NCBI GenBank assembly: GCA_038496445.1
Contig: JALMLS010000179.1
Coordinates: forward strand, 310,001 to 374,000
Reading direction: 5' to 3'
Length of the DNA: 64,000 bases
From: Trichosphaerium sp. ATCC 40318
Taxonomy: Eukaryota; Protista; Tubulinea
The notes beneath the pieces are model-generated. The model was not told where the DNA came from. It made no database searches and saw only the letters and a program-made list of their open reading frames with translations. Position numbers and translations under genes: made by a program. Positions 43,193 to 54,435 of the stretch are shown one piece after another (within the stretch, counting starts at the first letter, position 1; every line of letters begins with the position of its first letter).

Positions 43193-46100
43193 TTACAAGT
43201 GAGATAGAAGATAAAACATAATCCCAAAGTAAATAACATTAAAAACCAAAATACCAGCAATAATAGAACCAGTATTAGTATTCTTATGTCTATAAAGGAC
43301 AAAGAACCAATAAGAAAAAAGGCCATAACTAACAACGACTAAACCGAAAGCAAAAGGTCTAGCTAGTGTGCTAAGCTTTTCAGTACTACCAGGATTAAAC
43401 AAATGAGTAATCTTTTGGCTCAATCCGCTAAACGTAATCTCAGGATGATCCAAAATCCCTTCGTTCCCGACTTGACTAACGTCATCACCCTCTATAACAT
43501 TACCAGTACCTTCATTAGCATCCTCAGACTCTTGGCTTATCTTTGAAGACGCAAGGAAAGCGTTTCTTGATTTTCTAGCTTCTACGGATGTGTAGATTAT
43601 AAAAGTACGTATTTCTACTGGTTTGATAGTCACTGGTCCTGTTACATCACCAATAGAATACATATGAGTCAACTTCGTCTCTTCAATAGTCTCTTTATCA
43701 CTTAACTGAAACGATTTACTTAAGTCTACTGTAACGGCCTTTTTATCATTGTCCTCCCATGGTACGTAGTGTATACGTAGAGATACTTGGTTAGGTTTCC
43801 AAGAAGCGTGCCTGGCTTTGTAAGATATAACATGAAGTCCATCTGTTGTTGAAATAGAACTATCTGGAGACAAAAGACTTGAGGTTTTCTTGAGCTTCCA
43901 AGCTGATATCTTTGGTATGGCTGATCTTGCGTGGACATAATGGAATGGATGCGTATGAGAAAGACTTCGGAGACCAGTCTTTGTTGTCAAGAAAGTCATT
44001 GGTGACTCCACTAAAAATATGACTGTTGTTAGCAGCGATTTGATTTGTTTTTGCATGTTTTGACTCAAAGCGAGATAGGATTTAAATAAACGTACCAGGA
44101 GCTGATTCTAGACGTAGCTTGAATTCCAACATTGTTGGAATATTATCTTTAACACCTTGACCGACACCTCTGTTGTCATCCTTGTTCAGACGACGAGCGA
44201 GCATGATCTACGCGAAATGTAAAAAAAACGCTGAGGACTTCAAGTGAAAGAAAGTTGAGTGTTTATGCTAAGGAACTCGTACCTCTATCATGCCTTCAAC
44301 GCCTGTAGAAGAAACACCATGACCTTCTTGTGTCAAAACATTGAAACGACGTTTTTTATCTTGAACGAATGCCGCAGAAGACATTGGGAAGTAGTTAAAG
44401 TTAAGTGGTTGGTCAGTCCTAAATGGAAAACAAATAAGTCAAGAATATTCTTGTTTTTTTCTTGTTTTTTGTTATGCACCTGTATTTACTTCTCTTCAAT
44501 GTCAATCCATTCATATCGTTAAATAGTACATTGTCATTCTTAATATCTGTCTTGTATTTAACTACAACCTCACTATGCCTAAATTTAGTGATATCAACCT
44601 TCATCTGCGAAGAAACCCAATCACAACCTAAAACAACTTTTTTTAGAACTTGACAAAAACAAACTCTTATCTTTAAAACAAGGGTAGCCCTTCAATTTGC
44701 AGTGTATATAGACGTACTAGGACAAGAGTAGATTCCAAGTGTTCTATCTATACCATTAAAAGTAGAACGGAACTCTTGAATCAAACTTCCTTTAACAACA
44801 ACCATTGCTGTTCGTTTTCTTTGAAGTGGTTGTGGAGCTCCTTTTGGCATAAACAAGTATGCTCCTGATTTAACAGAATCTGTGTACTCTCCAAATTGTT
44901 CGTCAACAGTCATGGACAATCCTGACTTCTTGTCTCCATCAACCTTCTTGTTCTTTAATGAAACCATACGTCCAGTCGTAAGCGACATTGTCAAAGATAT
45001 CTTTGAATTCTCAATGACAGAAACGTCGGCCATTGACTTTCTCTTCAATCCAAGGAACTTCGCGTCCTCTTGTTTACCCTTCTTGATGAAAGATACTTGT
45101 GCTACATTCGATGCTGATGGTGGTTTGTCTATTCCTGATATGAAGTATGTCTGTAGAGACATTGGAGCAACATCAACAAGGAACAAGATGCGAACAACTG
45201 ATTCAGTGATACGATCTTCTACAATAACAGGAGCGATCTCATGCTTGATTACTTTACCAGCACTGTTCGTTACCTTGATGTTTGCTGTTGAAGAATACAC
45301 TGTTGCTACATCAACACGTTGTTGTGCCAGAGAGTTGATGATAACAACTGGTACGGTTTGACCTTTTGAGAGAGGTTAGAAAAAGACAAAGGGATAAAGA
45401 CTGCTTTAATACTTACCGTTTGAAACCTTTACTACTCTTGGTGCTCGGAGGTGATCGTGTTGTAGCGATTCTTTACCGTAAAAGAATACAGGTTTTTCTA
45501 AGAGAATATAAGCTAAACTGTAACTGTTTCATAAAGTATCGTACTCAATACAGTTTTTGCTCCTAGAACTATAGCACTATGCCTTTCAATGACATCTCGT
45601 AGCCCAGAATATGCTTTAAATAATATTCTACCATAATCCACATGTACAAAGTCCTTGGATGTTCCTAAGAAGATAGACCTTAGCAATCGCTTTCTTCCAA
45701 CAAGAAACAAAAATTTACCTGTAATTCCATCGTGATGTAAATAAAGACCGGCTGCTCTTCTTGCCTCTTGTATTACCTTAAAGTCATCCTTAGACTCGCT
45801 TCCAGACCACTGGTATAACATATCGGCTAGCCTAGTACAAGTTAGTATCCAATACAAAAATAAAAGAAAACAGTCACCTTATGGTATCTTCAATATCTCT
45901 TATAAAGCTCTTGTAGAATATTCTTGAAGTAAAATATCCACTCCAATAATCTTGGTGTCTATCTGAGTATGTAAAGAAATCACCTTGCAATACAGGCAAG
46001 TGTTTACGCCATTCTTTTTGTGAGTAGACTGTCTCTAAACAAATATTTTAAGCACTTTTTTGAAGTGGTTTATTAGAAAGTCGAACAGCACCTGATTTGT

Positions 46101-52311: not shown

Positions 52312-52751
52312 CGTATGAAAAATAGATCAATAAAAATCAATCATACCAAATTATCAATCATTTTTGTTTTTGTACAAAAGTTGAATAGGCCACGTATAGC
52401 ATGAAAATAAGTTTTGGTGAGTTAATTGGTCCTCCTACCAGACTTGAATGTAAATCCTCATATAAACGCCGTGGATGCTTCTTTGCGCGTAGAAAAGGCG
52501 ATTTAGTGTAGAGAAAGTCGTTTGCTGTACTGTACAAGAATGACATAAATCCAATTTTTGCTGCTAGTTTTCACCCATCTTAACGCTTCAATACAACGGT
52601 GTCGGAGAGTGCTTTCAATCGCATGCTAAGCGAATACAGAAATCTCGTAAAAAAAATGATATTTTTGGGATGTTGACACGAGTACATCTTCAATCACCTT
52701 GAATCCTTTTTATAATACATTTGTGATTTTATTTCTTACAGCGTTTGTGTC

Positions 52752-52825
52752 CGCAATATGTTTTTATCAATCCTGTCACACCTTTCTAGATAAGGTTTCT
52801 TGACAGTAAATCATCTAACATTGCA
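52752..52825 (-). promoter_or_regulatory. Type II SECIS element in the MsrA 3' UTR
   Basis: Minus strand reads UGCAAUGUUAG-AUGAU-UUACUGUCAAG-AAA-CCUU AUCUAGA AAGG-UG-UGACAG-GAU-UGAU-AAAAACAUAUUGCG. This gives helix I, the AUGA/GA core, helix II (CUGUCA/UGACAG), AAA 11 nt after the core and an apical CCUU/AAGG mini-helix. Confidence 0.9.
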
Positions 52826-52862
52826 AAAAGCATTCACTGTTTTTCTTTGTTATACAATTCAG

Positions 52863-53969
52863 TCAGTCAGAAGAGCGAACCAACTTTTTTACTTTGTGGG
52901 GCATCTTTAGCTCAAAGATTTCTTTCTGAAGATAATCCTTATCGGCGTATTCGTCGCAAAAACCTGAGGCTAATCTAAAAAAAGTCTTAGAAACCGAAAC
53001 AATCACGTGTATTTTGAGTGAAGTTTTTTTATATTTCAAACAAAAGTTAAGGATGTTGTCATCCCTTGCTTATGCTTTGTTTGTTTATTATTATATTAAT
53101 ACATACCCATTTAATTTACATGCGAGTGGAGACAAAACCATTTGTCTATCGCTCAAACCAGCTGCGGAATACATTTTTTTATTTCCTCTGTTTTAAACCA
53201 ATTAGTTCGGATTCTTTTTATGTTTCACTATTAGTTACCTTAAGTAATATTTTTGGTGGTAGGGCTCAGCATGAGTCCACAGTTTTGATTTTTCAATGTC
53301 AGTATAAATTTTCTTGCCAAGCGCTTTCTAAGTTTTGGTTGTTAGCTTTGAAACAATAAAACCGTTCAGTGTACCTGACGCTCTTTCTTTGACTTTTTGG
53401 CAATCTCTTTTTGCTCAGCGTTGTGATAGTATATAGCAGATCTATATTGACGCCCTCTTGGATATGAAGCAGTATGTGTTTGCCAAAAAATTTCGAGTAG
53501 CTTTGAGTACGATGTCTACAAAACAAGTAAGTTTCTTTTTGTTACTTTTTATCAAAAAAAAAGAGAAGGACAAAAAAAAAACAATCACATACAACGTTTG
53601 TGTCATACTCAATTCTAATAGACTCAGTATGGTCTCCCATAGTTCTGTAAGATGGATTTGCCATGTTACCACCTGTGTAGCTGCGAGAAATGTGAGCTTT
53701 TATATTTTGATCTAAAAGAGTTACATACCCAACAGTTGTCGTGACTACGCCCGGAACGCAACCAAAGATAGCGTCCGGGGTCCAAAATCAACCTAAAATA
53801 GGTAAGCGGGTATCTTTGAAGTATTGTCCGCATTCTTCCGTTAAAAGCGAGTGTCAAATGCTTTAGGCCCATGTTGGTACGTACCAGTAGCGAAAGAGCA
53901 AACTTCAATGTCCATTGGCTTCTTAACCTTATAGGACTTGGATCGCTTAAGATTAGTCGACGATCTCAT
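52863..53969 (-). CDS. msrA: Selenocysteine-containing peptide methionine sulfoxide reductase A, 7 exons (about 219 aa)
   Basis: Exons 53969-53885, 53792-53729, 53680-53593, 53515-53375, 53327-53239, 53187-53107 and 52974-52863 total 660 nt. They give FATG-U-FWTPDAIFGCVPGVVTTTVGYTGG...GDHTES...QYRSAIYY...AEPYHQKYYL. TGA at 53790-53788 occupies the catalytic GCFW position. Confidence 0.95.
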
Positions 53970-54435
53970 ACCTTAGTTGTGTTTATGATAGTTGTAAAGT
54001 GAAATAACGTCAAAAACATGACTTATGGCGGACAAATGGTCTAACTTAACCTTGACGTCAAATAGCGAACGAAAACTGCTGTTTCGTTGTCCCTTCCCAT
54101 AATATCCACTAGGTACTCATATGAAATGATGTCATCCATACTCGCACACTTCACTAATCGAGTCTTTCGAGAAAATAACGACACTTCTTTAATCTTTTTT
54201 TCTGTTGAGTATTTCTTCCAAAAGTCTCCTAACATGATGGTTCGCTGTTTGTTTTATTTACAAGTCCAAAAAGACATTTATCGATACTTCGTAGTACCAA
54301 GAGAAAAGTAGAGGGTATTTACAAAACGGAAGTACCAACGCCGCTACACGTCGCGTGACGCACTTCGAAAAAATACTACGCGTAGCTAGGCAACAAAGTT
54401 TGTTTCTGGTGACATTATACTGCGGTTCTTTTGAG

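Follow-up and report, generated by a model that had tools for sequence, protein, structure and literature searches.

The closest described counterpart of the gene analyzed here is the selenoprotein MsrA of Clostridium oremlandii (CoMsrA; PDB 4LWJ-4LWM and 4U66; PMC4333827, PMC4479559), whose active site comprises the GCFWG motif together with Tyr47, Glu55, Gln89, Tyr90, His137 and Tyr140 (PMC4333827). MsrA proteins with selenocysteine (Sec) at the catalytic position (Sec-MsrA) are also found outside bacteria, and among eukaryotic selenoproteins Sec-MsrA ranks with the most widespread (PMC7539508, PMC3473315, PMC2375036). Algal hosts include Chlamydomonas, Ostreococcus, Thalassiosira and Emiliania, and invertebrate hosts are Amphimedon, Trichoplax, Nematostella, Capitella and Branchiostoma (PMC2375036, PMC7539508, PMC3473315). 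The protein is known from Ostreococcus and Thalassiosira (PMC2375036), is among the algal selenoproteins with the widest distribution (PMC7539508) and is widespread in marine invertebrates (PMC3473315). A first-pass annotation of the locus, made from the DNA letters, had stated that Sec-MsrA occurs in some bacteria and algae, with which the literature agrees, extending the distribution to marine invertebrates (PMC3473315). The algal and marine invertebrate proteins resemble the one described below in family, in the UGA at the catalytic Cys, in the 3'UTR SECIS and in the aquatic life of their hosts, which is a likeness at the level of the family.

Within the Amoebozoa, Sec use is scattered (PMC4561486). 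The sole amoebozoan selenoproteome in the searched literature is that of Dictyostelium discoideum, which comprises five selenoproteins and no MsrA (PMC2375036), in agreement with the first-pass annotation. Neither an amoebozoan Sec-MsrA nor a paper linking Trichosphaerium with selenocysteine was found in the searched literature, and the published draft genome of Trichosphaerium sp. (37.69% GC, mean intron of 75 nt) leaves selenoproteins unmentioned (PMC10521059). The window analyzed in this study is a stretch of 64,000 nucleotides from Trichosphaerium sp. ATCC 40318 (assembly GCA_038496445.1, contig JALMLS010000179.1, positions 310,001 to 374,000). Its GC content is 38.1%, and the GC content and introns of the MsrA locus match the published draft (PMC10521059). 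Dictyostelium was rejected as a source on account of the GC content and of exact and closest matches from MMETSP, Trichosphaerium and Cochliopodium.

Gene structure, protein family and truncated relatives

The gene was modelled from the sequence on the minus strand (53969..52863) as seven exons separated by six GT-AG introns of 92, 48, 77, 47, 51 and 132 nt, in that order. The spliced frame comprises 660 nt, or 219 codons, and its sole internal stop is the TGA at codon 30. The features of the locus are as follows, with transcript contigs of four studies designated X1, X2, X3 and X5.

53885..53969, minus strand: exon 1, with the start ATG at 53969-53967, coding for MRSSTNLKRSKSYKVKKPMDIEVCSFAT and the first base of Gly29
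53793..53884, minus strand: intron 1, 92 nt, GT..AG, whose excision builds the G-U-F-W codons; joint present in X1, X2, X3 and X5
53729..53792, minus strand: exon 2, with the putative Sec codon TGA at 53790-53788 (codon 30), followed by FWTPDAIFGCVPGVVTTTVG
53593..53680, minus strand: exon 3, coding for YTGGNMANPSYRTMGDHTESIRIEYDTNV, with Tyr61 and Glu69; PMSR profile positions 29-60
53375..53515, minus strand: exon 4, 47 aa, with Gln102 and Tyr103; PMSR match of 38 bits, profile positions 63-113
53239..53327, minus strand: exon 5, with His150 and Tyr153 (AEPYHQKYYL); PMSR profile positions 119-144
53107..53187, minus strand: exon 6, based on transcript contigs, alignment, PDB sequence match, AF2 model and Foldseek
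52863..52974, minus strand: exon 7, remainder of the predicted helical domain and the terminal stop TGA at 52865-52863
52707..52862, minus strand: 3'UTR, with AATAAA at 52733 and contig ends at 52707-52723

Removal of intron 1 joins GCT ACT G to GT TGA TTT TGG and gives A-T-G-U-F-W, in the wider context S-F-A-T-G-(TGA)-F-W-T-P-D, which places TGA where MsrA proteins have the catalytic Cys of GCFW. The central claim of the first-pass annotation, that excision of 53793-53884 produces GGT TGA TTT TGG with UGA exactly at this Cys, was thus borne out: the junction is the same in our model and in the contigs of four studies, and codon 30 aligns with the GCFWG of the Cys-forms, its column holding the TGA of five relatives and the Cys of the Cys-forms. 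The seven-exon model also bears out the five introns that had been placed 3' of the UGA; the accompanying remark on escape from NMD is generic to selenoprotein mRNAs.

The 5'UTR (54005-53970) contains no ATG. Exon 1 begins with a basic 18-residue N-terminal extension (MRSSTNLKRSKSYKVKKP; 53915-53969, minus strand), which is present neither in CoMsrA nor in any of the relatives, and Met19, the second in-frame Met of exon 1, is aligned with the start of the relatives. It is possible that the extension is a targeting signal, or that translation in fact starts at Met19. A 64-aa ORF on the same strand (54041-54235) ends ~36-55 nt upstream of the 5' end of the MsrA mRNA and showed zero depth in four runs; a neighbouring silent gene may have its last exon here, or the ORF may be no gene.

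The public record of the gene is an MMETSP ORF call (P0151), which has Met56, shortly 3' of the UGA, as its start and is identical to residues 56-219 of the window protein, as had been anticipated for automated annotation. Pfam, PDB searches and structure prediction were run on the exons and on this fragment. P0151 matched the Pfam family PMSR (PF01625) with 90.5 bits (E 1.7e-25; cut-off 23.7 bits), and exons 3, 4 and 5 matched it in collinear order in the profile search. The alignment showed that the MsrA active-site residues are kept (G29-U30-F31-W32, Y61, E69, Q102, Y103, H150 and Y153), the last six being the equivalents of the Tyr, Glu, Gln, Tyr, His and Tyr residues of CoMsrA listed above. 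With these matches and no other internal stop, the rest of the protein is an intact MsrA, as the first reading of the locus had it.

The best PDB sequence matches of P0151 were the C. oremlandii selenoprotein MsrA entries (E 8e-28), with an alignment that extends into the helical domain, as far as CoMsrA residue 180-181 of 209; the next type of MsrA scored 66 bits. In the AF2 model of P0151 (pLDDT 85.8), the C-terminal ~65 residues are all-helical, with pLDDT of 83-93. Foldseek aligned the whole model to CoMsrA only (164-169 columns, 38-39% identity, probability 1.00), and other MsrAs over 80-100 columns; weak points are the TM score of 0.49 and rmsd of 7.4 A to CoMsrA and a model that starts at residue 56, without residues 1-55. 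The Pfam family PF20939 ("Selenoprotein MsrA, helical domain") matched neither P0151 nor its residues 105-164 at E<=10, and it matched the relatives P0003 (3.7e-11), P0126 (2.2e-07) and P0063 (6.6e-04). Exon 7 alone gave chance matches only against the PDB. The resemblance that the first-pass annotation had seen to C. oremlandii-type MsrA and its helical extension is supported by the PDB match, the predicted tail and the Foldseek alignment, although PF20939 is silent on the window's own tail.

CoMsrA and the window protein are similar in having Sec (predicted here) in G-U-F-W, in two shortened loops (GD-HTE and a short stretch before QY), and in a C-terminal helical domain after YHQKYYL, which is predicted for the window protein and comprises residues 145-209 in CoMsrA. 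They differ in several respects. CoMsrA is bacterial and has a bacterial-type SECIS within the ORF, whereas the window gene is eukaryotic, with introns and a type II SECIS-like element in the 3'UTR. CoMsrA has no Cys (1-Cys type), whereas the window protein has four (C24, C40, C179 and C189), one of which may act as a resolving Cys, and does not fit the 1-Cys type. The motif ends as GCFWG in CoMsrA and as GUFWT in the window protein, Thr being the fifth motif residue in its clade. Unlike that of CoMsrA, the tail of the window protein is too diverged for PF20939.

A phmmer search with exon 4 as the query against 1.84 billion representatives gave 212 matches. Among the best 150 of these 212, the catalytic N-terminus was missing from 127, and 20 had Cys there (GCFW); in a second family search, 100 of 118 members were without GxFW. 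We read the DNA of five independent relatives (L001, L002, L003/4 and L005, JGI environmental assemblies; L006-8, Logan assemblies), which are 37-57% identical to the window protein. An in-frame TGA in G-U-FW was present in all five, in four of them within the ATG-U-FWTPDA context of the window, and the database proteins begin just after it. These relatives resemble the window gene in the TGA at the same codon and, together with P0001 (Trichosphaerium sp. ATCC 40318, MMETSP0405; the closest, with 57% identity) and P0057 (the relative from Cochliopodium minus), in a helical tail with a KLNG motif; L001-L008, P0001 and P0057 are in databases solely as uncharacterised, truncated ORF calls. The truncated P0151 and the two family searches suggest that the clade is systematically truncated in databases, bacterial MAG entries included. 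In one relative (L003:1-153), the FTCGTG-TGA-FWT segment occurs twice in frame at the 5' end of the contig, owing either to an artefact of the assembly or to a short duplication in tandem.

The same truncation bears on the alternative that survives best, although we regard it as very improbable, namely that UGA30 terminates translation and that the sole product starts at Met56, an N-terminally truncated protein that is catalytically dead or a regulatory remnant. The public ORF call, which comprises exactly residues 56-219, agrees with such a product. However, the 29 codons before the UGA and the 25 codons from the UGA to Met56 are kept in frame with the relatives (SFATG-U-FWTPDAIFGCVPGVV), the TGA recurs in five relatives and a SECIS-like element is present, and a product from Met56 would lack the catalytic motif as well as the strand and the helix with which the fold begins.

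SECIS-like element and the terminal UGA

The 3'UTR contains a hairpin with the following features, ~620 nt from the UGA of codon 30 to the core.

52750..52827, minus strand: type II SECIS-like element, based on folding, Rfam alignment, energy scan and shuffles
52827-52818 paired with 52759-52750, minus strand: helix I
52814-52811, minus strand: AUGA core, opposite UGAU
52769-52766, minus strand: 3' UGAU
52806-52801 paired with 52778-52773, minus strand: helix II (CUGUCA with UGACAG)
52800-52797, minus strand: unpaired AGAA
52796-52792 paired with 52784-52780, minus strand: apical mini-stem (ACCUU with AAGGU)

All parts of the SECIS consensus are present, i.e., the AUGA core, the unpaired AA, the GA of the 3' side, and helices I and II, and the apical mini-stem above the unpaired AGAA assigns the element to type II. 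Helix II is short, with six Watson-Crick pairs and a bulged lower part, and a rigid SECIS pattern scan demanding at least eight helix II pairs missed the element, since the bulge leaves seven. In an energy-based scan applying identical rules to 603 ATGA sites on both strands of the window, the MsrA element ranked first, with -17.1 kcal/mol vs -11.9 kcal/mol for the runner-up. Among 22 shuffled versions of the window, amounting to 2.8 Mb, a candidate as good or better was found three times (~1 per 940 kb), which corresponds to a chance of ~2e-4 for such an element in a ~155-nt 3'UTR on the correct strand. The next-best candidates of the window, at 43485 on the minus strand (-11.9 kcal/mol) and 37426 on the plus strand (-9.8 kcal/mol), lie inside the range of shuffled sequence and are probably due to chance.

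The Rfam family SECIS_1 (RF00031) aligned over its full length (1-64/64), with AUGA, AAA and UGAU in register, and scored 17.1 bits, below the gathering threshold of 35; by the Rfam cut-off the hairpin is not a member of SECIS_1, despite the full-length alignment. The E value of 0.65 (171 nt x 4227 families) becomes ~1.5e-4 for the one family asked. The match came from a scan restricted to the 171-nt 3'UTR, and an Rfam scan of 2.5 kb at E<=1 missed it. The type II SECIS announced in the first-pass annotation is supported by its anatomy, its transcript coverage and the shuffles, and the SECIS_1 score is its weak point. In X2, which represents a slightly divergent strain, a 5-nt insertion is located at 52839, just 5' of helix I, and C>U at 52760, at the edge of the 3' strand of helix I; the core, helix II and the apical part are identical to the window.

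Each of the five relatives has an ATGA...GA hairpin candidate shortly 3' of the stop, with z of -3.5 in L005 and -5.1 in L006; the minimum free energy folds of the candidates in L001, L002 and L003 are ambiguous. An Rfam search of the five loci at E<=10 returned no SECIS_1 rows, which is uninformative, since the window's own 17 bits correspond to E ~26 there.

TGA is likewise the terminal stop of the gene (52865-52863), with 51 nt separating it from the SECIS core downstream and 38 nt from helix I. Decoding it (codon 220) would append 15 residues (LNCITKKNSECFLQC) before a TAG inside the SECIS. The minimal UGA-SECIS spacing is ~51-111 nt, and because UGA220 is at only 51 nt from the core, near this minimum, it most likely acts as a stop. 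We infer that one MsrA mRNA uses UGA both as Sec, at codon 30, and as stop, at codon 220.

Some protists reassign UGA, and the residue at codon 30 would then be one other than Sec if UGA were reassigned genome-wide or read through by a near-cognate tRNA (e.g., as Cys or Trp), with the hairpin being incidental. We hold this to be very unlikely, since the same gene stops at UGA where the C-termini of the relatives end, the hairpin fits the SECIS consensus and is very improbable by chance in a 3'UTR, and relatives from other lineages show post-stop ATGA...GA hairpins, including the two whose z scores are given above.

Transcript evidence

Runs of four studies (X1, X2, X3 and X5) were placed on 52500-54300 as assembled contigs rather than raw reads; assembled contigs drop rare isoforms, and neither the expression level nor the exact ends can be read from them. 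The X1 contig (834 nt) and the X5 contig (846 nt) are each 100% identical to the window and span 53987/54005 to 52707/52713. All six introns are out in both at precisely the predicted positions, so that the proposed splice junctions are confirmed at the RNA level. Intron 1 is also bridged in X2 and in X3, the latter being a library entered as RNA-Seq. For X1, X2 and X5, the designation as RNA is a guess; intron-free contigs, however, are only possible from spliced RNA. As the contigs run intron-free from the UGA through the hairpin of the 3'UTR, the mature mRNA holds both.

X2 and X3 differ from the window at four coding positions, all 3' of the UGA, of which Y61, S96 and S218 are synonymous and D219N is not; three synonymous changes out of four agree with a frame that is under selection beyond the UGA. 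Among the observations that the first-pass annotation had named as speaking against its reading are transcripts using another acceptor that removes the UGA, and reads with TGT or TGC at this codon. Neither was encountered in the contigs: a single junction set was seen in the contigs of all four studies, and letters 53788-53790 (TGA) were unchanged in every run.

These data also bear on a minor splice form that would skip the UGA and give a Cys-containing or Sec-less MsrA beside the Sec form. Such an isoform, if rare, would be invisible in contigs, but four studies gave one and the same junction set and no nearby alternative acceptor restores GCFW, which makes it highly improbable. The possibility of a recent pseudogene or of an assembly or sequencing error, in which a single base change turned TGT or TGC into TGA, is effectively refuted by the TGA found in the contigs of four independent studies, a divergent strain included, and in the corresponding codon of five distant relatives, and by a gene that is expressed and fully spliced, with mostly synonymous downstream substitutions.

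A second, paralogous MsrA transcript was also observed. Contigs of X1, X2 and X5 match 53729-53790 (exon 2) with five differences, and their flanks encode IEVCTFSTG and YTGGKKDNPT; a search of the window for the paralog's flank gave no match. P0001, an ORF call starting with MGDHSES, may be this paralog of the window MsrA; if so, its truncation hints at an upstream stop there too.

Function of the gene and its significance

We conclude that the gene is a genuine, expressed Sec-MsrA with a catalytic PMSR domain and a predicted helical domain at the C-terminus (probability of about 0.9), because of the RNA contigs, the TGA in five relatives, the SECIS statistics and the ORF call that starts from Met56. 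The presence of Sec itself at codon 30 is what the sequence evidence points to. The spliced mRNA carries UGA at codon 30, and in the proposed mechanism the type II SECIS ~620 nt 3' of it would recruit the eukaryotic Sec-insertion machinery, with SBP2 and eEFSec inserting Sec at UGA30. ARAGORN detected no tRNA gene in the window. Sec30 of G-U-F-W would then attack the Met-S-O sulfoxide, helped by Tyr61, Glu69, Tyr103, His150 and Tyr153, to form a selenenic acid, for whose reduction a glutaredoxin/thiol system of the kind described for CoMsrA is the probable route, possibly with the participation of one of the four Cys residues.

Sec-MsrA is already an established and widespread family, and the window gene involves no new mechanism; apart from its mis-annotation, it is therefore a correct but ordinary addition to this family, and its practical value lies in re-annotation. 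A gene on public record only as a 164-residue fragment without the catalytic residue is corrected, and the frequency of truncation at the UGA in the two family searches (127 of the best 150 matches and 100/118 members) matters for redox-enzyme surveys that use databases. Sec-MsrA is also added to the Amoebozoa, where the Dictyostelium selenoproteome is small and without MsrA, and its occurrence in a marine amoeba accords with the view that aquatic organisms keep large selenoproteomes (PMC2375036).

A broader reading can be offered only tentatively, and we consider it possible rather than probable. In this reading, the gene is one of at least two Sec-MsrA paralogs expressed by a marine amoebozoan whose selenoproteome is large and undescribed, it stands for a GUFWT-PDA clade of eukaryotic enzymes of the CoMsrA type that truncated ORF calls hide almost wholly, and UGA as Sec and UGA as stop are told apart by position alone. 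If this is true, the gene, with its terminal UGA at about the minimal UGA-SECIS spacing, would lend itself naturally to testing how recoding depends on spacing.
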